DNA of 64,000 nucleotides from contig JANHCV010000002.1 of assembly GCA_025594325.1 (NCBI GenBank), positions 992,001 to 1,056,000 on the forward strand, in the 5' to 3' direction. The position numbers were made by a program, and so were the translations under genes. This document shows positions 26,569 through 52,585 of this stretch, one piece after another (the first letter of the stretch is position 1; the number at the start of each line of letters is the position of its first letter). Below the pieces are notes generated by a model. It had not been told where the DNA came from and searched no databases. It saw only the letters and a program-made list of their open reading frames with translations. Origin of the DNA: Blastocladiella emersonii ATCC 22665 (lineage: Eukaryota; Fungi; Blastocladiomycota).

Positions 26569-26645
26569 GCCCGCGCGCGCCCCCGCCGACTTCTCTCGCT
26601 CCCCACCTAACCGACTACCTCCAAAACAACGAATCATCATCAAAT

Positions 26646-27878
26646 ATGCCCTCTGTCGCCTATTGCATCGGACTGAACTACAGCGGCTCCGAGAGCCCGC
26701 TGTCGGGTTGCGAGATCGACGCCAACACCATGTCGGGCGTGGCGGCGGGCATGGGCATCGACGAGATCAACACGGTCACGGACCTCGACGAGCCCGTGAC
26801 GCGCGACCAGGTGCTCGCCAGTCTGCGCGAGATGGTCGCCCAGGCCGAGCCTGGAGACTCGCTGCTCTTCTCCTTCTCGGGCCACGGCGGCCAGGTCGCC
26901 GACGCCAACGCCGACGAGACCGACGGCCATGACGAGGCCATCTACTGCAGCGACGGGCCCATCACCGACGACGAGATCCGCGAGATCATGGCCGACCTGC
27001 CCGAGGGCGCCAACATGACCATGGTGTACGACTCCTGCCAGTCGGGCACGATCGTCGACCTCGACTTCAGCGACGCCGACATTGCCGGCAACCTCGTGGT
27101 CCTGTCGTCGTGCACGTCGACCGAGCTGTCGGGCGCCACCGACAACGGTTCGCTCTTCACCAACGCCGTGGCCGAGGTCATGGCCGCCAACCCGGGCGTG
27201 ACGTGGGCCGAGGCCGCCGAGCTCATCGACGCGGCCGACGGCAGCGACACGCAGTTCGCCAACGTGGCGGCCAACCGCGCCGAGCTCCTGTACGAGCCCG
27301 CGTTTGCGCCCGTGACCGAGGCCGCACGCGACCACACCGCCGAGGCCGCCGCGCTCGGCTCGGCCATTGCGACCGAGGACCGCGACGGCGACGGGTACGC
27401 GGAGCGCACGGTCGAGACGCTCGAGGACGGCACCGTGATCGAGTGCGTCGACCTCGACGGCGACGGCGTCGTTGACGTGACGGCCACGCACCACACGGAC
27501 GGCACCACGACGCTCGAGCACGACCAGGACGGCGACGGGTTCGCCGACACGGTCGCCACGTTCGCCGCCGACGGGTCCGTCACCTACGTCGCGGCCGATA
27601 TGCCCGCGTACACGGGCGGCGCCGAGGGCGGCGACGGGTACCTCGAGACGCGCCTCGAGACGTACCCCGACGGGACCCAGTTCATCGGGGTCGACTACGA
27701 CGGCGACGGTGTCCTCGAGACGGGCGCGGATACCAACAACGACGGGCTGATTGACGGCGCCATGGATGTGAATGTCGACGGGACCACGGACCTCACGTAC
27801 CAGATGGATCTCGCGGGCGGCGTCACCGAGCTCGCGGCGATCGCGGATATCGACATTGGCGGCGATGTGTGCTGCTAA
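26646..27878 (+). CDS. Metacaspase (peptidase C14) fused to DxDxDG calcium-binding-type repeats, ending in CC; intronless
   Basis: IGLNY..L.GC.ID, FSFSGHGGQ (catalytic His), acidic loop DANADETDGHDEAI, YDSCQSG (catalytic Cys), p10-like VVLSSC..GSLFT, followed by the repeat tail. Confidence 0.9.
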   Translation: MPSVAYCIGLNYSGSESPLSGCEIDANTMSGVAAGMGIDEINTVTDLDEPVTRDQVLASLREMVAQAEPGDSLLFSFSGHGGQVADANADETDGHDEAIYCSDGPITDDEIREIMADLPEGANMTMVYDSCQSGTIVDLDFSDADIAGNLVVLSSCTSTELSGATDNGSLFTNAVAEVMAANPGVTWAEAAELIDAADGSDTQFANVAANRAELLYEPAFAPVTEAARDHTAEAAALGSAIATEDRDGDGYAERTVETLEDGTVIECVDLDGDGVVDVTATHHTDGTTTLEHDQDGDGFADTVATFAADGSVTYVAADMPAYTGGAEGGDGYLETRLETYPDGTQFIGVDYDGDGVLETGADTNNDGLIDGAMDVNVDGTTDLTYQMDLAGGVTELAAIADIDIGGDVCC

Positions 27879-28004
27879 GTGGTGCGAAGGCGGTTTGTGC
27901 CTTTGTTTGATAGATACTCCTTTCTGCTCCACCTGTGCGGTCCTCATGAGCGACGCGAGCGACCGCAGACGCGTTGTATCAGTACATGTCCCTCCCTCAC
28001 ACGA

Positions 28005-31333: not shown

Positions 31334-34129
31334 TCAAATGTCGTCGAACAGGTTTGTCTTGGGCCCGGCCCCCGCCTTCTTTCCGTTCCCGAACGCACTG
31401 AAGCTCGCCGACTTGGCGTGCCCGCCGCCGCCACCGCCGCCGCTCGGTGCGGGCGCGGCTGGTGGTGGCGCGAGACTGGCGGTCGCCAGTGCCGGCGCAG
31501 CTCCACTCGACCCACCGCCGGTGCCGCGCCCGAACCCGCCAAACGACGACAGCGACTTGGGCACCGACACGGACACGGACGACGAGAGCGGGTGGCTCGA
31601 CGACGTCGCCGTCGTCGCCGTGGTCGCCGGCGGCGGCGGGGGTGGTGGCATCGGAGCGGGACCCGCCGGCACCGCCGCCTGCTGCGCGGGCGCACCTCCA
31701 CCGCGGAAATTGCTGAACATGTTGTTGATCGGGTTGAGCGGGATCGTGCGTCGGCCCGCCGCGGGCGAGGGGCCGGTCGACCCTGCGCTCGCGGGACTGT
31801 GCGCGCCGCTGCCGCTCGGTGGGGGCACGGGAGACGCGCTGGCCGAGTTCGTCGTTTGCGGTCCGGGTGGCGGCGGCGGGAGCGGTGTCAGCTTCGTCGG
31901 GGGTGGCGATGGCGCAACGGCCGCGGCGCGGGCTGCCGACAGCGCGGCCGAGTTGGCGATCCCGCCGATGGTGCGCTTACCGCGCTTGGAGAGCGGGACG
32001 AACGCGTCGTCGGCGAGGTACGTCGGCGAGATGGCGTTCGGCGAAGCGACCGCGGGCGACGCGGCCGACGGCTCCATGGCGGTGACGAGCCGCTGCTGCT
32101 CGATGGGCGCGGTGCTCGAAGTCGAAGCGGACCACGCGACCTGGTTGCCCGCGTCGCGCTGCGCCTTGGCCTGCTGCAGGAGGAGCCGGCCGTCGGCGCG
32201 CTCGGCGCCGCCCTCGCCGCCGAGCTCCTCGTCCTCGGCGGCCACGTACGACGTGTCGAGGTTGAGGCACTTGAAGATGCGGCCCTGCACGTTGAGCAGC
32301 GTGATGGCGCACAGGATCACGAGCGAGATCGGGACCCAGTCGTTGAACCCCTCGCCGAGCAGCGGGACCAGGTTGACGGTGCCCATGACCTGGTTGAACA
32401 CGAGCCGCTCGGCCTGCGCCAGGTTCGTGAAGTTCCACGCCATCGGGAACGTGAACCGCGTCATCTGCGCGGCAAAGAAGAGCAGCGACGGGACCGCCGA
32501 GTGGTGGCCCGGCGCGAGCTGGTGCAGCGAGAAGACGCGCAGCGAGAGCAGCGGCACGAACGCGCACGCCGTCAGGTACACGACCGCGCCGAGGCAGATG
32601 GCCTGCAGCAGCGTGTAGGAGTGCGTCTGCGTGATCAGGGCGAGCACCGACAGGCCCATGTTCATGGTGATCTCGCTCCATAGGATGCCGGCCGAGAAGA
32701 GCGCGAACACGACGGCGAGGACCCGAAGCGTCGCGGCGCGCAGGTAAATGTACCACACGTAGTCGAGCCGCTGCCGCCACGCCGGGCGGAACTTGCCGAC
32801 AATGTGGAACCGGCGGTCCGAGTTGTCGGCGTTGTCGAGCACGTCCTGGTAGAAGTGCGCCGTCGTGATGAGCGAGTTCCACTTGCTACACGGGCGTGCG
32901 AACGTCAGTCCGCTGTTGCTCGCCCGCTACACAAGCCACGGCGAGACGAACTATCGCCAGTTGTTGTACTCGCGCTGTGCGCGTTTGAGCGAGCGATTGA
33001 GCTGCTGTAAACTCTTGAGCGTCACCGAGCCCGGCGGCGGGGGCGGGGCCGCAGCGGGCTGTCCGCCCATGCCGACGCGCGAGAGCCAGCCCGTGATCCC
33101 GCCGCCACCGTTTGCAGCCGCCGCGGCAGCCGCGACGCGGTGCTCGTTCGGGCACTGCAGGAGGAGCTGCTCGACGTAGGGGCGGTTCTGGTCCGACACG
33201 GCGACAGCGCGGTCGAGGGCGGCGATCTCGCGGTAAATGGCGTCCCGCTCGCGCGTCGCGGTCTCGAACGACTCCTTGTAGCGCGGGGCGCGGTACTCGA
33301 GGATGGCGAGGCCGCGGCGCACGTCGGCAGCGTGCCACACCTCGCGCGGCACATCGACGAGGCCGTAGCTCAGGCACAGGATGAGCAGGATCAGACCGTA
33401 CGCGTTGGACAGCGCCATGCCGACGCCCTTGAGCGCAGCACTACAGTCGTGGCGCGTAGTTGGTGAGTCCTGGATCGCGGCGATGGTCGGCAGCGCGCAA
33501 CGTACAAGTTGATGGGTCCATTGACCACGGCGAGGTACGCGAGGAACACGAGGCCGATGATGAGGAGCACGCCGTAGTACCACGCGTTGTACCGGATGGC
33601 CTTGCGGAAGCGCTGGCGCGCCGTGAACCCGCCCGAGTTGTCGTACGACTGCAGGATCGGGATGGCGAGCCACGTCACGAAGAAGAGCGTCCAGTAGATG
33701 GACTGCCAGACGGTCCGCTGGGTCGCAGTCGAGAGGTAGACGAGGGGCGGGATGCAGTCGGACCCGCTCGCCTCGACACACTTGCGGTACGAAGTCTATT
33801 TGGACGGAGGCTCGCGTCAGCCAAGGAGAGAACAGTTTCAGGTGCACGCGAACACGTACTGAAGACAAGTCGAGCGGCAAAAAGTAGAGGATGGAGAAGG
33901 GGCCGGCCCAGCCGACTAGCACGACGATCTGGACATACCACGCGGCCGTCTTGCGGTCGCCGAGGTGGTTGACGATGGCGGCCGCGAGGAGGACGACGAG
34001 AACCCATCCCGTGATGATCCACGGTTCGCCCCAGTCCATGTCAAGGCTGGGCATCGCGGGAGCCGTCGGCCCGCCGCTGCCTCCGGTGCCGCCATCGGGC
34101 TCGACAGGGAGCGTCGCGTTGAGATACAT
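31334..34129 (-). CDS. LMBRD2: LMBR1-domain protein 2-like multi-pass membrane protein (multi-exon)
   Basis: LPLDLSS, W..IYWTLFFVTWLAIPILQSY..SG.FT...RF..AIRYN, MALSNAYGL.L....L.YGLVDVPR..W and A..FS..ILWSE. Confidence 0.88.
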
Positions 34130-41528: not shown

Positions 41529-44500
41529 TTACATGTGGTGCGGCTGGCGCCCGTGGCTGCTGCTGCTGACGCGCGGGCGCTTGGCGGGCCGGCCGCCGTC
41601 GCCGCCGCCACCGTCCATCATCCCGCCACCACTGCTATTGCCCATGAACTGGTGCTGTGGGTGCTGGTGCTGCGAGTGCTGGTGCTGGTGCTGCGGGTGC
41701 CCAAGCATGCCGCCCATCTGCTGCTGCTGGTGGTGGTGATGATGGTGCTGCTGCTGCTGCTGCATGTACTGCCCAGCGAACCCGCCGCCGCCGCCACCGC
41801 CGTTGCCGCCCACCATGAGGTCCGACGCGCTCGCGGCGCCCGCGTCGTGCTGCTGCTGCTGCTGCGGCTGGTACATGAGCCCCGTCGTGTCAAAGTTGGA
41901 CGCGAGGAGGGCGTCAACGGCCTGGACGTTCGTGAACGACCGCACGCCGCCGCCGCCGCCCATGCCGGCGGGCGCGAGGAGCGGGGCACCACCGCCGCCG
42001 GGTTTGGACCCGGGCGCGCCCATGGACTGCTGCTGCTGCTGAGGCCGGCTGAGCATCCCGGACACGAGATCGACGCCGCTGCTCGCGCCGCTCGGATTGC
42101 TCGTGGTCGGGAGCCCCGAGTCGGTGCCGCCCATGGCGGCGGCGGCAGCTGCAGCGGCGGCCGCGGCGGCCGAGTTGGTGAACGACTGGAACGCGGCGAG
42201 CGAGGTGGCGCTGCCGCTGAGGTCGGCGCCGTCGGGACTGCTGAGCCCCTGCTGCGACTGCTGCTGCTGCGACTGGGACTGCTGCGGCTGCGTCGTGAAC
42301 TGGAACTGCGACGCGGCGGCCTGATCCTGCTGCAGGTGGAGGAGGAGTTGCTCCATGGGTTTGCTGGTCGGCGCCGCGTTACGCCTGCCCGTCTGCTGGG
42401 GCTGCTGCGGGGGCGCGGGCTGGAACGGCGGGATCGGGTTGCCGGGACCGCGGGCGGACTGCTGCTGGTGCTGCTGTTGCTGCTGCTGCTGCTGCGCGGA
42501 GAACATGCCCGCCATGCCGCCCTGCGCCTGCTGCTGCTGCTGCTGGTCCATATCGCCGAACGCGCCGGCACCGCCCGCATCGCCGCCGAGGAACTGCTGC
42601 TGCTGTTGTTGCTGCTGCTGTTGAGCCCCACCGTCCATGCCGGTGAGCCCGAGCGGGATCTGGCCCGACGCCGCGAGCCCGACGAGGTCCGCGGCGTTCG
42701 CGAGCGAGCCGAACGGGCCGGAGACCGCGGCCGCCGCCGCCGCCGCTGCAGCCGCCGCAGCCACCGCGGACGCGTTGGTCGAGGGCGCCATGAGCCGGCC
42801 GTCGCCGACCTGCTCGATCTCGTCGCCGTCGTCGACCTGGTCGACCTCGCTGAGCGACGGCTCGGTGTCGATGCCGCCAATGCGGCGGTCGTGCTGCTTC
42901 TTCTGCTGGTCGGACGCGAGCGGCTCGTCGTCGGGCAGCTCGGTAATGCGGCCGGACGACGACTGGTACCCGATGCGGCCAGCGGCGCCGGGCCCGCCGG
43001 CCGCGGCCGCGTTGCCCGTGGCGGCGGCGGCGAGGAACCCGATGCGGCCCGCGGGCCCGCCCATGCTCATGCCGACGCCGAGGCGCATGCTGGAGGGGAC
43101 AGCGGCGCCGGACGTCGCGGCGGCGGCGGCCGCAGCCGCGTTGCCGTGCTGGCGGAGGTGCGCACAGAAACGCTCAATGACGGCCTTGAGGGCGAGCTTG
43201 GAGAAGGGTTTGGGCAGCACCTCGTCCATGCCGTGGGCGAGGTAGGTCATGCGGTCGCCCTCGGACGTGTTGGACGTCATGGGGATGATGGGCGTCCACG
43301 TGTTGAACTGGCGGATCTGCGACGCCGCCGAGACGCCGTCGAGGTTGGGCATGACAATGTCCATGAGCACCATGTCGTACTGGCCCGCGTTCATGCGGTG
43401 CACGGCCGCGAGCCCGTCCTGCGCCACGTCGAACTGGCACCCGAAGATCTGCAGCAGCTTGCCCGACAGCTTGCGGCAGATGGCGTCGTCCTCGACCAGA
43501 AGCACGCGCGGCGGCGTGTCCCACTGGAACGCCGGGGTCGCGGCCGCCGACGGGTTGGCGCGCACCGCGGGACTGCTGAGCGTCAGCGGCGCGCCGCCCT
43601 GCATCGCCGACGAGGGCGGCGGCGGCAGCGGGAACGGCGGCGGGTTGACCTGGACCGACGACGCCGACGCGGACGGCGCGGGCTGCGCCGCCTGCGCCTG
43701 CTGCGGATTGGACGGGAAGAACTGCGACTGCGCCTGCGACTGCTGCGCCTGCTGCTGCTGCATCTGCTTCTGCAGCGACATGGCGGTGCCCGTGTTGGTC
43801 GGGATCCCTTGCGGCGCGCGCGGGATGCCGCCGAACGGCCGCCCCGCCGCCGCCGTGTCCTTGGTTCCGCCGACGGGCGGCGACACGTGCTGCTGCTGCT
43901 GGGTGTTGGACGACTGCTGCTGCTGCCACTGGTTGCTGCCGCTGTTCCCACGCACCCCAGCCCCGCGGCCGGAGATCGGCGCGCGGTGGTGATGGTGGTG
44001 GTGGCTCGGCGGCGGGGGCGCGAGGTCATCGCCGCCGTACCCGTACTCGTCGTGCGGCGGCGGGGGCGGGGGCGGCGGGACGTCGTCGTACTCGTCCGCG
44101 TACCGCGGGCGCGGAGGCACGCGGCCGGCGCCGGCGCCGCGGCGGTCGGGGCCCGGGTAATACGGGTCGACTATGGCGGGCTCGTCGGCGGCGCCGCTGC
44201 CGCGGTACGGGTCGCGCGCCGAGGCGCCGCCGTTGCGGAGGTGCGGGGGCGGCCCGCCGGGCCCGCCGCCGTACGGCGGGTACCGGTCGTCGGCGGGGTA
44301 CCCGCCGCGCGCAGCGCTGCTGCCGCTGCCACCGGGCGGTGGCGGGTGCGCGTGGTGGTCCCACGGGCCGCCGACGGCGTCGTGGTGGTACGGGTCGCGA
44401 GGGCCGCCGGATCGCGGGCCGCCGGCGGCGCCGGGCGCGTGCGGGTAACGGCGCGAGCCGGGCGGCGGCGGGTGGTGCGCGTCGACGGCCATGTCGTCGG

Positions 44501-46142
44501 GGGCGTAGCCGTGGTCGAGGTGGCGCGGGTGGTCGCGGGGGCGGCCGCGCGGGCGGAGTGGCGACGCCGAGGTGGCGGTGGTGTCTAGCGCGGCGGCGGA
44601 GGCGACGAGCGGGTTGCCCGACTCGAGGCGGCGGCCGAGGTCCGAGGCCATGTGCGAGCGCAGCGCGTCGTGGTGCTGCTGTGCGAGGTGGCGGAGCGCG
44701 TCGTGGTTGCCGTAGCGGTCGCCCGAGTCTGGTTTGGGGGAAGTGCGTTAGCGTCCGGCCGAGAGCGAAGCGAGTAAGGGGAAGAGCGTACAGTAGTGGG
44801 CATTCGAACTCGCGAGCGTGTCGGCCATCTCCTGGAGCAGGCGCTCCTGCGTGACAAACAGCTTGCGCATGGCGAGCAGCTCGTCGACGACGATCTTGTA
44901 ATTGCGGTCCATGCGCTGGATGTACGCGTCCATGTCGACGTGGTACCGGGCCACGTCCTCGAGCTGCGCCGCGAGCTCGGCCGTGGTCGGCCCGTTGGTG
45001 GGCGGGAGCGGGAACATGCCGCCGCGGTGCGGCGGGCGCGTCGACGGCTGGTGGTGGAAGTGGCCGCCGCTGCCCGTGCCGCTCCCGGCGCCGCTGTTGC
45101 CCGTGTGGTGCGTGCCCGTCGGCGCGGCCATGGCGGGTTCGGGAGGCGACGCGCGGTTGCCGGCAGACGTGGCGGGCAGGACGCGGCGAGCATCGGCGGA
45201 CCCGCGGGCGGGGGGATCGGCGCGCGAGCCCGAGGCGGACGACGCGGCGGGCGCGGCAGCAGCGGGGGCAGGAGCCGCCTCGGCGGCGGCGTTGTTGGCG
45301 CGGGCGGCCTTGGACGAGGAGGTGGGCTTGCGCGAGATGTGCTCGAGCAGCTCGGGGCGGTGGAGCTGGAAGTTGGGGTGGTTGAACTCCCAGGCGAGGT
45401 CGCCGTAGGGCCGGCGGCCGTCGTCGTACTTGACCTTGTGGAAGTCGTACTTGTTGAGCTGGCGCACAAACGACGAGAAGTTGTTGTGCTTGAAGTGGCG
45501 CGGCAGCACGTCGCGGGCGAACACGTTGGGGTCGGTGACGACGAAGGAGGTGCCGTCGGGCGACCACGACACGGCCTCGCGGTTGTCGGGGCTCTCGAGC
45601 ATGCGGAACAGCTTCTTGACAAAGTCGGGGATCCCGACCGAGATGGCGAGCCGCAGGCGCGCCGCCGTCAGCGACTCGGGCGTGGTGCGGGCCTCGAGGC
45701 GCGCCGTGGCGGCGGCCGCGCTCATGGACGCGGTCATGGCGAGCCCCGTGGGCGTGCCGCTGAGCGCCGACGAGGACGACGCCGCGGTGCCCGTGGTCGC
45801 GCCCGACGATGCGCCGCCGGCCGGCGTGGTCGGATCGACGTCCATGTCGTTGCTGCCGGCACCGGCGGCACCCGTGCCCGCGGGACGGCGCTCGTCGTCG
45901 TCGTCGTCATCATCATCGTCATCCTCGTTGTCGAGCTCGTTGGGGTCAGCGTCAGCGCCGCGGGCGGCCGTGTCGAGCGGGTGCTGGGGGCCGCTGCCGG
46001 ACGGCGCGGCAATGGGGTGTCGCAGGCCCGACGGCAGCGGCAGCGGCGGTGGTGGTGGTGGTGGTGGGGGCGCGGCCGACCCGGCGGCGGCGGCAGCGTC
46101 GCGGCCGTTCGCGAGCGGGCGCGCAAAGGGTTGCTGGTGCAT
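41529..46142 (-). CDS. SKN7: Skn7/Prr1-type HSF DNA-binding domain plus response-regulator receiver; intron 44791-44729
   Basis: FVKKLFRMLE..VSWSPDGTSFVV..FARDVLPRHFKHNNFSSFVRQLNKYDFHKV; coiled coil; RVLLVEDDAIC..YDMVLMDIVMPNLDG..TPIIPMTSN..GMDEVLPKPF; poly-Q tracts. Confidence 0.93.
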
Positions 46143-47703
46143 TGCGGCGGCTGCTGCGGCTGCGGTGGAGGTGGTGCGCGCAGAGCAGAGCAGAGGTGGG
46201 AGCGCGGGCGCGCAGCGGGCAGAGTGCGGTGATTTTGCGGGTGGGCGATTGCGGGCAGAGGCGGTCGGGCGGGAGCGAAGAGGAGGGGGCGTGGGCGGGG
46301 GCGGGGGCGGGGGCGCGGTCGGCCGTCGGGCGGGTCGCGAAGCACAGCGCAGCGCAGCACGTTCGTGGGCTCGCGCGGCTGCTCGCGCGGTCTGGATTGC
46401 GGGAGATGGGCCCGTGTGTGCCGTTGCAGCAAGTTGAAGGGCCGCGCGAGGGAGAGGAGGGAACAGCGAGCGGGACGACGGAGGCTGCGCGCGCACACGC
46501 TCGGCGTTCGTTCCGCCCACATCAGCGTTCGCCACGGCCAACCGCTGCTGCTCCCCGCTGATCGATACGGCCATCCCGACACGCGCCGAGCATGCGGCCG
46601 AGCGCGCGCCCACCAGCGCTCTGCGCCGGCTGTGAGACACGGCGCCTCTCGCGGCGCTGTCGTGCGCGACATCATGCCGCAGCTGGACGGCGACCCTGGG
46701 CGACGTGCGCGACGGCGAGCGCGGCGGCAACGCCGGGTGACGCACGCGCGAGTCGAGGGGAACGCGGCGCCGGGACCGCGTCGTCAGGCCGCGCCACCGA
46801 GCGGCCCCCGAGTCCAGGCCCGACGCGCGACCACCTCCTCTCCTGAACGCTAACCGCCGCTGTCCCTTGGCCAGGGGTGGCCGGAGCAAGGCGCGCCGCC
46901 CCCGTGCGGTCACATGGCTGTGAGACGATGTCTCCCCGGCCAAGGGAACTAAATGCCCCGGCCGACGCGCGTCGGGAAAAGGCGTGACGGCACACGTGAC
47001 CGCCCGCCTCGGCGCCAGCCGGCGTTGCTGCAGCGCGCACGCTGCCTTCTCGCTCTCGCTCTCTCCTGCCCTGCCCTGCCCGCCGTGCGAACGCTCCCGT
47101 TCTCCTCACCGGAGCCTTCTCGCGAGCTGCTCGCTGCGAATCGACGCCCCGTTGTCCGCCCTCGCGTGCATCGCCGCCTCGTGCCCCTTGAGCGCTGCGC
47201 GGTTCGTGTGCCCTCCGCGCGACCGCTGTCTCCATTGGCGAGCGGCCTCGACTCGACTTCTGTCAGCCGGCTCGTCCATCGGTACCAATCGCGTCTACAA
47301 CGCGCTTGAACGAATCGTCAATCTCGGTCGCATGTACGTCCGCTTCGTCCCCCCTCGACTCGCCGCCGTGCAGGGACCGCCATCCCTCCCATCCCCTTCT
47401 TCGATCCTCGCCGTCACCCAGTTTCGTCGCTCGAAGCACGATTGCTCTCCAGGGGCTACTCGGAGCGCGAAGCATCCTGGAACGGGCCCGCGCCTCGCGC
47501 CAGTGGCCGCGACCGCAACCGCGCCCCCGCGCGCGAGCGAGAGCGACCCCGATCCGTTCCATGCCTTGCCTTCGTTGCGCCTGCGTGACGCATCCCGCTC
47601 GAGCCCTGGCCCTGACTGCTGCTCGCGTACTGACGGCCGACCCCTGCGCCACCTTCTCCTCCCTCCCTCGCTTCTCTCTTTCCCACAGCCCTCGATCACT
47701 ACC

Positions 47704-50700
47704 ATGCAGCAGCAGCAGCAACAGCAGCCGCAACCACAACAACAACCTCAGCAGCAGCAGCAGCAGCCGTCGGCCCAGCCGCAGCAGCCCGTCCAGCAAC
47801 AAGCGCCGCAGTCGCAGCAGCCGATCGTGCTCCCGCCCATGAACGTCAACGCGCCGCCATCCTCCTCGGCCTCGGCCGCGGCCGCGCCGGCGCCAACGGC
47901 AGCTGCTGCCAAGCCCGCCACGGCGCCCGCTGCTCCGAAGCCTGCCGCGATCCCCACAGGCTCCATGTCGTCTTCGTCGTCGGCCTCGGCCTCGGCCGAT
48001 CCGGCTGCCCAGCGCGTGCCCTCGGCGTCGCCCGCTCCCGCTGCTGCCGCCAAGCCGAGTACCGCTGCCCCCGCCCAGCAGCACCGTCCGGCACCTGCAC
48101 CAGCAGCTGCCCCTGCCCGCGCACCGACCACGGCGACGGCAGCGGCACCAGCGACCACGGCCGCGACCCCCGCCGCCGCCGCCGATGAGCCCGAGCGTGC
48201 CCTCAACGTCTCGGACGCGCTGTCGTACCTCGAGGAGGTCAAGCGCCAGTTTGCCACCGACTCGGTCAAGTACACGCAGTTCCTCGACATCATGAAGGAG
48301 TTCAAGGCCCTCACGTACGCTTCGATCTCCGCCCCTTCTCCTTTCCCGACCGCTCACATCCCTCCAACGCAGGATCGGCACGCCCGAGGTCATCGCCCGC
48401 GTCTCGGCCGTCTTCCGCGGCTACCCGCGCCTCATCCTCGGCTTCAACACCTTCCTGCCCAACGGCTTCCGCATCGAGATGACGGGCAACCCCAACTCGC
48501 CCGTCCGCGTCATCACCCCCGAGGGCATCTCGACCCCGCAGGACCCCGTCGTCGCCGCGGCTTCCTCGGCTTCCGCCGCGTCCAAGCCGGCCGCGAGCGC
48601 TTCAGCTGCTCCCGCGCCCGTCGAGGCCAAGGCGCCCGTCGCGGCGGCACCGGCAGCGCCAGCTGCTCCGGCCCAGTCGGCTCGCCCGAACCAGCAGCAG
48701 CCCGCGGCTCAGCCTGCTCGTCCCGCGCCGGCTGCCCGCCCCGCAGCACAGCAGCCGCAGCAGCAGCCGCCCGCCCAGCAGCAGCAGCAACCGCCCGTGG
48801 CCCGCCCGGCTCAGCAGTCCTCGGCTCCTGCCGCCGTACCGGCACCAGCTCGCACCGCGGCCCCGCCTGCTGCACCTCGCCCGACCGGCTCGGCCCCAGC
48901 TCCCGCCACGGCACGTCCAAGTTCGGGCTCGGACCACGCCTACCCCGAGGCACCAGCGCACGGCGCCGCGTACGCGCCTGCCGCCAAGCCGCCGACGGTC
49001 CCTGCACCCGCAACCGCCCCGGTCCCAGCACCGGCTCCTGCCGCCGCCGCCGCTCCTGCTCCGGCATCCACCATGTCGGCGCACGCGACGGCGCCGGCGG
49101 CGCCCGCAGCCGGCCCGGCCCCGGCCAACCACCTCGACCTCGGCCAGGCCGTCAACTACGTGAACAAGATCAAGCTGCACTTTATCCACCGCCCCGAGGT
49201 GTACCGCCAGTTCCTCGAGATCCTCACCAACTACCAGCAGGACTGCCGCCCCGTCGAGGAGGTCAACGAGCACGTCCAGGTCCTGTTCCGCGACGCGCCC
49301 CACCTCATCGACGAGTTCAAGCAGTTCCTGCCCTCGGCCAGCCGCCCCGCCGCCCCCGCGGCCCCGGCCGCGCCCGGTCGCGGTGGACCCGCCCCGGGTC
49401 GCGCGACGGGCGCCGCGGGTGCGCTCGCGGGATCGACAGCTGCCCGCGCACTGCAGAGTGCTGGCGCCGCCGCGTCATCGACCGATGCTGGCACCACGCT
49501 CTCCGTCTTCACGTCGCGCCCCGGTACCCCGCCCGGCGCCATGCCGCCCATGGGCGACCATTTCCCCGACACGTCGGCCGGCAAGGCCGCGGCCGCGGGC
49601 AACTCCAAGGCCGTGGCGTCCGCCTCCGCCGCCGTCCCCGGCGCGCCCGCGACCAAGAAGCGCCGCGTCGCGGCGAGCGAGGGCAAGGCCGCCGCGGGCG
49701 GCACCGCGAGCAAGAAGAAGGCGCGCACCGACGCCTCGGGCGCGTCCTCAACCGCCGGTGCCGCGGCCAACTCGGGCCCGCCGCCCATTGCCGCCGGCGA
49801 GGAGATGGAGCTGTTTGACCGCATCAAGAAGCGCATCAACTCGCCCGCCGTCTACGCCGAGTTCCTCAAGCTGCTCAACCTGTACGCGGCCGACACCATT
49901 TCGCTCGGCGAGCTCGTCGAGCGCGTCCAGGGGTTCCTCGGCCAGCGCGCGCCCGACCTGTTCAAGGCGTTCAAGGACCTGGTCCGGTACCCCGAGCACG
50001 CCGCTGCCGTTGCCGCGGGCACCGCTGACGGTGCGGCTGCCGCGGCGGCTGCCGGCAGCGCCCTCCCGCCGCTGCTCCTCAAGCCCGCCACGGCGCACAT
50101 GGACCCGGCGGGGATCGCGTGGGACGAGCCGTTCACGGGGTTCGCCAAGTACAACTGCCCGAACGGCATGGACACGTGGCAGCAGGTCGGCCCGTCGTAC
50201 CGGCGCATCCGGCGCGGCGTGCGCGTCGGCCAGTGCAGCGGCCGCGACGCCCTGTGCCGGTCGGTCCTCAACGACGAGTTTGTCTCGCACCCGCCCACCC
50301 ACAGCGACGCCAACGCCGAGGACCAGCTCAACGTGCACCGCCGCAACGCCCACGAGGAGCACATGTCCCGCGTCGAGGAGGAGCGGTACGAGTTCGATAT
50401 CAACATCGAGGCCAACGCCGCGTGCATCCGCCTCCTCGAGCCCATCGCCCTGTCGCTGTCGGTCATGCGCGAGGACGAGCGCCGCGCGTACCGCCTGCCG
50501 CGCGGCCTCGGGTCCAGCGCGCCGTCGATCCTGGATCGTATTCTCAAGAAGCTGTACGGCGAGAACGCGGCGCAGGTCGCCGACGGCCTGTGCAACTCGC
50601 CCGCGGTGGCCGTCCCGCTCGTCCTCAAGCGGCTCAAGCAAAAGGACGACGAGTGGCGGCGCCAGAAGCGCGAGTTCGCCAAGGTGTGGCGCGAGTCGGA

Positions 50701-52585
50701 CGCCAAGAACTTCTACAAGGCGCTCGACTACCAGGGCGCCGCGCTCAAGGCCAACGAGAAGAAGTTCTCGATCAAGACGCTCATCCAGGAGGTCGAGGCC
50801 GCGTACCTCGAGGCCAAGGAGAAGCGCGTCATTGCCAACGCCGCCGTCATCCACCACCTCGAGCTCCCCGTCGCCGACCGCTCGGTCCTCATCGACGTCT
50901 TCGACCTCCTCGCCAGCCTCAGCGACGGGCCCTTCAACAAGCTCCGCCCGTTCCTCGAGTCCTTCTTCTTCTCCGAGGTCGACCCCAACGCCGCCACCGC
51001 GGGTACCGTCACCGGCGCCATGGGGACCACGGTCACGGCGGGTAACGCCATGGCCGTCGACGGCGCCGCTGACGGTGCTGCGCCCGGGTCTGCGGCAGCT
51101 GCTGCGGCGGCGGCCGCGCGCCGCCGGTCGACGCGCAAGCAGGTCAAGCCCGCGTCGTCGGTGACGTGCTTCGGCAACAACAACATCTACCTGGTGATGC
51201 GGTTGGTGCACATGGTGTACACGCGGCTCGAGGCGCTCAAGCGGCGCGGGACCGAGCTCGCGCGGCAGACCGCCGGGTCGCTCTTGCGCGTCAACCCGAC
51301 GGCCATCGAGCTCGGGATGCAGGACCCGCCGACGGCCGAGCAGGAAGCGGCCGCGGCCAACCCGCTCAGCTACTACCCGACGACGCTGCGGCTGCTCGAG
51401 CAGTCCCTGCGCGGACGCCTCGAGACGACCAAGTTCGAGGAGGCGGTGCGCGGCATGTTCGGGACCGCCGCGTACACGGTCTTCGCCATGGACAAGACGG
51501 TGCAGGCCGCGCTCAAGCAGGTCAAGGATGCGGTCAACGACGCCAACACCAAGAAGCTCCTCGCCCTGTACTCGCCCACGGCCGCGCTCCGCGGCGGCAA
51601 CCGGTACCACCACGAGACGCTCACCCGGCTCGCCGCCGAGGATATCGTCGCCAAGACCAACCACAACAACCAGGACCACGTCTACCGCCTCGAGTACCAC
51701 CACCCGGTCCCCACCGCGGCGGCACCCTCCGCGTCGGGCCGCCGCGCTGGCCGGACCCACGCCGCAACCCCGCTCGGCGCCGCCGGCCCGCACGCCAACA
51801 GCTACGTCCTGACGGTCCAGCTGCTCTCGTCGCAGGATTTCGTCAACGGCGACGAGGCCAAGTGGTCGCAGTACGTCGAGCAGTACACGGGGTCCGGCGC
51901 CGTCGACACCGAGGGGTACCTGTTCTCGGCGTCGGGCGCGCCCACGGCCGCCGCGCGGTCCACGCGGTCACGCCGCAGCAACGAGCAGCAGCAGCCGGCG
52001 GGCGGCATGGTGTCGGGCGACGAGTCCGGTACCGGCGCAGCGCCGATCGCGGTCGCGCCGCCGTTCCTGCGCCGGTCGTGGCGCCAAGCGGTCCGCGGGC
52101 TCGAGCACCGCGCCGCCAAGGGCAAGCAGGACCACGTCGAGGCGCACGGCGGGCTGCAGCTCAAGATCTGCATCAACACGTACCGGCTGTTCTACATTGC
52201 CCAGACCGAGGACTCGTTTGTGCGCGTCCGGTCCGACACCCCCGCCCCGGCGCCCGCGCCCGCAGACCAGCCGCGGCTCGCCAAGCTCGCGGCGTGGTGG
52301 GAGGGCCCGCAGGGCTGGAACCGCGACGCGACGGGCGATGTCGGCGAGGTCGACCGCGCCCGCACCGACCGCGTCACCAAGTGGTTCCTCGGCATCGAGC
52401 CCGCGCGCCCGCGGTTCGCCACGACGCGCGACCCCGAGTCGGGTATCTACACGTCCCGCACCCGGGCCAACGGCGAGGACGCTAGCGTGCCCATGGACAC
52501 GGACCTGCCACCAGCACCAGCAGCGGGCACGGACGACGTCGAGCCCGTGCGCCGGCTGTTCCCGGGCTTCGCGCCGCGGAAATGA
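47704..52585 (+). CDS. SIN3: Sin3 co-repressor scaffold (PAH1-3, HDAC-interaction domain, Sin3_C); intron 48315-48372
   Basis: LNVSDALSYLEEVKRQF..YTQFLDIMKEFK/..LILGFNTFLP; PAH2 AVNYVNKIK..YRQFLEIL; PAH3; GPSYR..CSGRDALCRSVLND.FVSHP; EEERYEFD; LKRLKQKDDEWR; KALDYQG. Confidence 0.96.

Follow-up and report, generated by a model that had tools for sequence, protein, structure and literature searches.

What does a metacaspase of a zoosporic fungus do with a long tail of calcium-binding-type repeats, and where did this gene come from? The question is raised by a gene at 26646-27878 (+) in a 64,000-nucleotide stretch of the genome of Blastocladiella emersonii ATCC 22665 (GCA_025594325.1, contig JANHCV010000002.1, positions 992,001 to 1,056,000), which we call the window. 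An initial annotation, made from the sequence alone, read the gene as a metacaspase fused to an array of DxDxDG repeats, proposed that it is a calcium-gated protease, and suggested that it may have come from bacteria. The open reading frame (ORF) has 410 codons with no internal stop and corresponds to the annotated protein P0001. We conclude that this is a real, intact gene for a metacaspase with a new C-terminal domain, and that it belongs to an undescribed lineage-specific expansion.

The N-terminal part of P0001, here called the head, matches Pfam PF00656 (Peptidase_C14) over aa 4-182 with 75.7 bits and E = 5.7e-21 (gathering cut-off 21.4). This is the only Pfam domain of the protein, and no GTPase domain is present. 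The best solved relatives of the head by sequence are yeast Mca1 (4f6o, E = 5e-25), the Candida glabrata metacaspase (7qp0, 1e-24), and Geobacter GSU0716 (5e-20). The intact catalytic dyad that had been noted in the sequence is confirmed, since His80 and Cys131 align with the dyad of Yca1 and CgMCA-I. The equivalent of His80 is kept in six of the nine closest paralogues, and that of Cys131 in just four. A full-length AlphaFold2 model, built from a nine-sequence alignment (predicted local distance difference test score, pLDDT, 73; predicted template modeling score, pTM, 0.53), has aa 1-220 in a caspase fold, followed by a disordered linker (221-240) and by β-hairpins. Foldseek searches with the head found 3bij and 7qp0 at template modeling scores by target (TMt) of 0.67-0.68, and GSU0716 and the yeast, plant, and trypanosome metacaspases fit about equally well (0.5-0.68). 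An NCBIfam match to 'caspase, EACC1-associated type' was rejected, with 36 bits against a cut-off of 140.

In crystals of CgMCA-I, Ca2+ is held by Gly196, Asp198, Asp214, Thr242, and Asp245 (PMC9622860). In a HMMER alignment, the head of P0001 retains all five of these ligands, as Gly94, Asp96, Asp108, Thr135, and Asp138, respectively, and Asp96 and Asp138 are invariant in the paralogue alignment A1. Because the head keeps the whole canonical Ca2+ site, the tail is not necessary to explain calcium dependence. Asp25 (in GCEID) and Asp129 (in YDSC) align to the matching Asp residues of Yca1 and CgMCA-I and are conserved in the family. By analogy with TbMCA2, we take these two positions to be the acidic S1 pocket that provides Arg/Lys specificity. 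The alignments suggest that the head by itself is a cysteine protease activated by Ca2+ and specific for Arg/Lys.

P0001 has no prodomain, because it starts at β-strand 1. The strand runs from residue 4, and residue 5 of the protein aligns to residue 56 of the crystallized Yca1 construct. In the model, the p10-like strand runs from residue 149, 18 residues past Cys131, and the fold ends near residue 220. Structure alignments and model thus bear out the earlier description of a prodomain-less protein with a compact p10-like region. A type I metacaspase has a Pro/Gln-rich or LSD1 zinc finger prodomain before the p20 part, and a type II metacaspase has a long p20-p10 linker. Since P0001 has no prodomain and no long p20-p10 linker, the head is neither type I nor type II.

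The C-terminal 173 aa, here called the tail, contain six D-x-[DN]-x-[DN]-G motifs. DRDGDG at 245, DLDGDG at 269, and DQDGDG at 293 follow one another with a period of exactly 24 aa, and DYDGDG at 350, DTNNDG at 362, and DVNVDG at 374 with a period of 12 aa. A degenerate loop, AEGGDG, lies at aa 326 (its GGDG at about 329). All of the motifs listed in the initial annotation are therefore present, and its estimate of a period of ~24-26 aa for the early repeats is sharpened to 24. The six motifs compare with 0.15 expected, and none of 20,000 composition-preserving shuffles of the tail reached six. Position 9 is D or E in all six. The 24-residue unit has the pattern DxDGDG-hydrophobic-x-[DE], strand, xDG turn, strand. 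A tail-only AlphaFold2 model made from 12 family tails (pLDDT 82, pTM 0.77) has ten strands paired as hairpins, three further loops, and a short helix. It places the two short strands joined by an xDG turn, anticipated from the sequence, in each of the four 24-residue units, after the loop; the fourth hairpin has the degenerate loop and is preceded by a 10-aa insert. As modeled, then, the tail is a separate module, a single-layer antiparallel sheet of four 24-residue hairpins plus three 12-residue loops, with six complete DxDxDGxx[DE] sites and one degenerate site in its sequence. No DNA-level tandem repeat was found under the protein repeats, and so the protein repeats are old.

EF-hands are helix-loop-helix structures round a 12-residue loop with Glu at position 12. 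The repeats of P0001 are not of this kind: EF-hand_1 gives 17 bits against a cut-off of 25.4, the loops lie between β-strands in the model, and their acidic ligand sits at position 9 instead of 12. A better precedent is found in the solved calcium blades of integrins and their relatives, in which Ca2+ is bound by Dx[DN]xDG together with a further acidic ligand two residues on (PMC3123361). All six motifs of P0001 have this acidic residue two positions on, although the AlphaFold2 sheet is open and not a closed propeller. We infer, on good grounds from motif and model, that the tail binds Ca2+.

The analogues of the tail among solved structures are all single-layer β-sheets, namely OspA, MORN, and TCP10 (Foldseek score by query, TMq, 0.5; VIA Z 7.5-8.8). 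Libraries of predicted structures gave bacterial proteins annotated as DUF6802, EF-hand or EF-hand_5, FG-GAP, and VCBS, with E down to 5e-7 in AFDB and TM of 0.57-0.63 in the ESM Atlas, and language-model features of the tail point to proteins of the same DUF6802/EF-hand/FG-GAP type. Pfam DUF6802 (PF20615) matches 11 of the 12 family tails at E up to 0.1, with a best value of 3e-6. Sequence searches with the tail went no further than weak matches to metagenomic proteins of DUF6802 type (about 1e-8) and one archaeal metagenome-assembled genome (MAG), the sole prokaryotic genome match to the tail in a pattern scan. In this MAG, from a Candidatus Poseidoniaceae archaeon, the match at L004:3001-3279 has 38% identity over 95 aa and covers tail residues 30-124. 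The tail is likely a distant DUF6802 relative, but not a demonstrable member. Weak Pfam matches of the tail to TcdB_toxin_midN, dockerin, and RHS were rejected as motif-level noise. A literature search found no paper on DUF6802.

Word-indexed protein searches reached little past the paralogues. An exhaustive profile search was needed, and among 1.84 billion representative proteins it gave 16,952 matches, 59 of them below 1e-30; the top matches begin at residue 1, like P0001. Source look-ups showed at least 22 distinct paralogues in B. emersonii, seven named proteins in Catenaria anguillulae, and two in the chytrid Dinochytrium kinnereticum. Scored per C14 domain, the family members range from 130 to 290 bits, and no outsider exceeds about 126; many long non-family matches rank high because they hold two to four C14 domains. 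In a maximum likelihood tree of 160 C14 domains, 38 members form a clade with a support of 98 in the Shimodaira-Hasegawa-like approximate likelihood ratio test (SH-aLRT). The clade splits into 35 blastoclad members (95) and three of Dinochytrium type (99), and the nine paralogues closest to P0001 form a subclade (97). The tree is unrooted, with taxon labels for about 40 of its 160 rows and most outgroup rows unlabeled. On these sequences, the clade is found only in zoosporic fungi, that is, Blastocladiomycota and a chytrid sister group, and is strongly expanded in B. emersonii. A literature search found no paper on blastoclad metacaspases.

Both His and Cys are kept in 19 of the 38 clade members, so about half are pseudo-proteases. 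Repeat tails, with at least one motif, occur in 17 of the 38 members, all from B. emersonii and none from Catenaria or Dinochytrium. The dyad is intact only in P0001, P0002, P0004, and P0006 of these 17, and the other 13 are catalytically dead; in these, Ser and Thr are common replacements of the Cys, and the His becomes Arg, Leu, Met, Lys, or Ala. Among the 1.84 billion proteins, and in every looked-up match that reaches the tail, the fusion of C14 with the repeat tail was found in B. emersonii alone, in agreement with the earlier remark that this is not the usual Mca1 architecture. P0001 is also a mosaic. Its head (26646-27311) is 84% identical to that of P0006, while its tail (27357-27875) is 77-78% identical to those of P0002 and P0003 and 43% to that of P0006. 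The different nearest relatives of head and tail suggest recombination or gene conversion between paralogues. Other family heads bear different tails, either acidic and disordered or rich in Gly, Pro, and Tyr.

Several of these other members were seen in passing. P0016, P0018, and P0019 of B. emersonii have intact-dyad clade heads and low-complexity tails rich in Gly, Pro, Tyr, and Trp, for example with repeated GGHWAAGSAPSFGDYHG, and have no Ca-loop repeats; P0018 shares its contig with the window. P0011 (845 aa) and P0015 (475 aa), also from B. emersonii, combine dead heads, in which His is changed to Lys or Ala and Cys to Ser, with much longer arrays of 8-12 DxDxDG motifs, and P0011 has two large internal duplications of a repeat block of roughly 230 aa. 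P0007 and P0009 (L001:10001-13297) are intronless tandem neighbors, both catalytically dead, with P0053 (locus tag 006609) a few genes on. The annotated start of P0006 (L008:2917-3000) is a downstream Met; the frame is open for 28 codons upstream to MVNAAVCFGLNY..., which restores the family N-terminus. The annotation of P0005 is probably truncated in the same way.

The composition of P0001 is unusual. The net charge is -76, with 8 Arg and no Lys in 410 residues, where 9.6 Lys are expected from five neighboring genes (P about 6e-5). Together, the nine closest paralogues have 8 Lys in 3,626 residues, and the family proteins are extremely acidic and nearly lysine-free. Arg228 is the sole basic residue of the disordered linker. 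Six of nine paralogues have Arg at this position, among them all four intact-dyad repeat-tailed ones, and Arg228 is a candidate cleavage site. At the other end, a C-terminal -CC is present in seven of the nine closest paralogues and in P0014 and P0053, and P0055 and P0160 end in CCC. Rab escort protein needs the Rab fold. The -CC of P0001 is a Rab-type geranylgeranylation signal, but the protein lacks the Rab GTPase fold, and so prenylation is unlikely. At another locus, a 207-aa gene with Prenyltrans (PF00432) repeats, L008:1520-2211 (-), lies divergently 790 bp upstream of the -CC-ending P0006, probably by coincidence.

We propose, with a probability of roughly 60%, that P0001 is a cytosolic, prodomain-less, Ca2+-activated metacaspase of the zoosporic-fungal clade, and that its multi-Ca2+ tail module aids its placement at the membrane. 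The tail would probably be loosely folded without Ca2+, because the protein has so large a negative charge, and would become rigid once several Ca2+ ions are bound. On a rise in Ca2+, the tail and the conserved C-terminal -CC, a candidate for acylation, would place or orient the protease at a membrane or a partner. The enzyme itself or an active paralogue could sever the head from the tail at Arg228, and the near-zero Lys and scarce Arg probably shield the protein from cleavage by itself and by its paralogues. The dead paralogues with the same tail may serve as noncatalytic partners or competitors, as in the case of Trypanosoma brucei MCA3/MCA4.

Several observations weigh against this proposal. 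Ca2+ binding by the tail is read from the motif and the predicted fold only. No solved structure with the tail repeat was found, as Foldseek E values were no better than 4e-3 and VIA Z was ≤8.8, which is background level, and DUF6802 scores 20.6 bits (E = 4.6e-4) on the P0001 tail, below its gathering score of 27 bits. The full-length model, with its pTM of 0.53, does not indicate coupling of head and tail, and S-acylation of the -CC is a guess. A run search for expression support of the gene gave three DNA runs from one sample and zero RNA runs. Furthermore, the ratio of nonsynonymous to synonymous substitution (dN/dS) among paralogues is high, 0.43-0.74 overall; by the Nei-Gojobori method, it is 0.45-0.61 for heads and 0.29-0.95 for tails, the value of 0.95 being that of the tail against P0006. 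These ratios mean either weak constraint on the tail or a dS depressed by the extreme G+C content at third codon positions (GC3). The latter probably does lower dS, and the ratios show only that the family evolves fast, with values below 1.

In the main rival to this proposal, the tail does not regulate the protease but serves as a Ca2+ buffer of high capacity, as a spacer, or as a docking module for proteins or membranes, and the protease is ruled by its own Ca2+ site alone. The complete canonical site in the head favors this, as do the disordered linker and the lack of any confident contact between head and tail. The same head carries quite different tails elsewhere in the family, the modules are exchangeable, as the different nearest paralogues of head and tail show, and the tail has been kept without catalysis in the 13 dead repeat-bearing paralogues. 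Nothing speaks directly against it, and it overlaps with our proposal, which includes docking and localization; the modularity of the family tails fits both equally well. Sheets of a single layer, MORN and TCP10 among them, usually act as binding surfaces, and by this analogy the tail could be one under either view. We regard this rival as unlikely but worth keeping in sight. We consider it very doubtful, by contrast, that P0001 is a decaying, nonfunctional, or unexpressed duplicate in which the intact dyad is incidental. The lack of RNA runs, the high dN/dS, and the loss of catalytic residues in about half of the family would fit such a duplicate. However, the frame is open for 410 codons, the catalytic, S1, and Ca2+-site residues, the family N-terminus, and the -CC end are all kept, the dN/dS of the head is below 1 in every comparison, and the Lys-free composition has been maintained.

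The remaining explanation is the one of the initial annotation, that the whole gene was taken horizontally from bacteria and later ameliorated, and we think it improbable. The gene is indeed a single uninterrupted exon, as had been stated, its compact head fits the structure of bacterial GSU0716 as well as it fits the yeast metacaspases, and the only look-alikes of the tail outside the family are prokaryotic DUF6802 and EF-hand-like proteins. But 2,438 of 10,031 B. emersonii genes, or 24%, are single-exon (PMC9730499), and P0003, 76% identical and on the same contig, has a spliceosomal intron inside its C14 domain. This intron (L009:3202-3284, 83 nt, GT..AG, with an ACTAAC branch site) follows codon 67, where the gene for P0001 is continuous. 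The phylogeny of the C14 domain, suggested as a check, puts the head, in an unrooted tree, in a clade of two blastoclad genera with a chytrid sister group. Nothing points to a recent bacterial import. By sequence the head is nearer to yeast Mca1 than to GSU0716. The best-scoring outsiders are mostly unlabeled by source, and those identified include euglenids and P0071, which comes from a eukaryotic assembly that has introns and neighbor genes of fungal type. The GC3 of 0.94 equals that of the neighboring genes. No relative of the head came up when 185,579 prokaryotic species genomes were scanned by pattern, and the tail has only about 30-38% identity, over parts, to prokaryotic sequences. An ancient prokaryotic origin may apply to the tail module alone.

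Taken jointly, our proposals would describe a network of metacaspases that Blastocladiella built independently, triggered by Ca2+ and tethered to membranes. Its members, mostly pseudo-proteases but with some active enzymes such as P0001, would all have a new kind of multi-Ca2+ sensor, the single-layer β-sheet, and a C-terminal di-cysteine anchor, with Lys and Arg purged against mutual cutting. Its role would lie in the Ca2+-dependent transitions that the zoospore life cycle goes through, and a cut at the linker Arg would free the head. That all of these parts are correct together is quite unlikely.

The features of the gene are given in the table. The family N-terminus, MP[SN]S.A.C.GL.Y, is kept in the paralogue alignment. 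Contigs assembled from short-read DNA confirm both gene ends with no differences, but they break in the paralogue-conserved middle, between nt 26957 and 27379. Within this break, at window 26970-27026, the summed word depth in contigs of the three DNA runs rises about tenfold, 1204 against 124. A rise of this kind would follow if many paralogues had almost the same DNA in the segment encoding DGPITDDEIR..LPEGA, possibly by gene conversion.

Features of the metacaspase gene, in nucleotide positions of the window
Feature	Position	Strand	Basis
Whole single-exon gene, 410 codons + TAA	26646..27878	+	ORF; annotated protein P0001 100% identical
Peptidase C14 caspase-fold domain, aa 1-222, p20 + compact p10-like part, no prodomain	26646..27311	+	PF00656, 4f6o match, AlphaFold2 model, Foldseek
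Catalytic His80 (CAC) in FSGHGGQ, SGHG aa 78-81	26883..26885	+	Aligned to catalytic His of Yca1 and CgMCA-I
Canonical metacaspase Ca2+ site: Gly94, Asp96, Asp108, Thr135, Asp138 (within aa 83-138)	26892..27059	+	HMMER alignment to 7qp0
Catalytic Cys131 (TGC) in DSCQSG, aa 129-134	27036..27038	+	Aligned to catalytic Cys of Yca1 and CgMCA-I
Disordered linker aa 221-240 with Arg228, candidate processing site	27306..27365	+	pLDDT <50 over aa 221-240
Four 24-residue β-hairpin repeats (aa 245-349)	27378..27692	+	DxDGDGxx[DE] loop, strand, xDG turn, strand; AlphaFold2 tail model
Three consecutive 12-residue Dx[DN]x[DN]Gxx[DE] loops (aa 350-385)	27693..27800	+	Sequence motifs
Predicted C-terminal α-helix aa 389-399	27810..27842	+	AlphaFold2 models
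C-terminal Cys409-Cys410 (-VCC), possible lipidation site	27870..27875	+	Conserved in paralogues

An antisense ORF of 435 aa, window 26640-27947 (-), covers the entire metacaspase gene; long spurious frames of this sort are typical at about 70% GC, and it is no evidence of a gene. No second family paralogue was found within the 64-kb window. PADLOC gave only a match to a generic caspase model, with no defense-system context. The ORFs of the window used as composition background include 41529-44648 (-), with a response-regulator receiver domain; 44748-46940 (-), with an HSF DNA-binding domain; 48479-52582 (+), with Sin3 PAH/co-repressor domains; and 32951-34126 (-), with an LMBR1-like domain.

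What does this locus add to our picture of metacaspases? Fungal metacaspases usually occur in one to few copies with a fixed prodomain-p20-p10 layout, and, to our knowledge, their Ca2+ regulation is understood only through the site within the catalytic domain. The gene described here is part of an undescribed zoosporic-fungal expansion in which a minimal catalytic core is combined with interchangeable C-terminal modules, among them an uncharacterized fold of calcium-loop repeats. It offers a natural setting in which to study the tuning of a metacaspase by pseudo-enzyme partners and a putative additional Ca2+-binding domain, gives access in a eukaryote to the repeat of DUF6802 type, and is an example of a protease family stripped of its own cleavage residues. 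The general view of how metacaspases work is unchanged by it.

Comparison with known systems sets P0001, by sequence among solved structures, closest to the fungal type I enzymes Yca1/Mca1 (4f6o) and CgMCA-I (7qp0/7qp1), with which it shares the caspase-hemoglobinase fold, the His-Cys dyad, the acidic S1 Asp, and the five Ca2+ ligands. It differs from them in having no N-terminal Pro/Gln-rich prodomain and a short region past the catalytic Cys, and solved metacaspase sequences align to it only to about residue 142. It also adds the 173-aa C-terminal repeat domain, the charge of -76, and the absence of lysine, and it belongs to a separate zoosporic-fungal clade. The bacterial orthocaspases and GSU0716 (3bij) have a similarly compact single-chain caspase fold without a prodomain, and 3bij is the top Foldseek match (E = 5e-15, TMt 0.68). 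However, GSU0716 is less similar to P0001 in sequence than is yeast Mca1, and none of the prokaryotic genomes scanned gave a relative of the family type.

For the tail, the small bacterial repeat proteins annotated as DUF6802 or EF-hand/FG-GAP/VCBS likewise have repeated DxDGDG loops between β-hairpins. They are stand-alone or lipoprotein-type, prokaryotic, and in no case fused to C14, their similarity to P0001 is under the Pfam threshold, and the DUF6802 family is itself uncharacterized. The calcium blades of integrin/FG-GAP proteins have the identical linear signature, with the acidic ligand two residues past the Gly and the loop between β-strands. The blades, however, are four-stranded, of about 60 aa, and form closed β-propellers, whereas the tail has two-stranded 24-aa hairpins and is predicted to be an open sheet. 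The OspA central sheet, the MORN repeats, and the TCP10/G-box of CPAP resemble the tail in overall predicted architecture, but they are unrelated to it in sequence and lack Ca-binding loops, and with scores no better than background the likeness is an analogy only.

The closest parallel for the family as a whole is in T. brucei, where MCA3 and MCA4 form a membrane-associated cascade of a lipidated active metacaspase and a pseudopeptidase (PMC3220528). The T. brucei proteins have no Ca-loop repeats, and the two expansions are independent. Lipidation in T. brucei is by N-terminal myristoylation/palmitoylation and has been demonstrated (PMC3220528), whereas in P0001 it would be at the C-terminal -CC and is deduced from the sequence. 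In both cases, a flagellated unicell has a multi-paralogue family in which active enzymes are mixed with Cys-to-Ser pseudopeptidases, and terminal cysteine motifs suggest lipid anchoring. The processing of a dead member by an active one is an idea that the two systems share.

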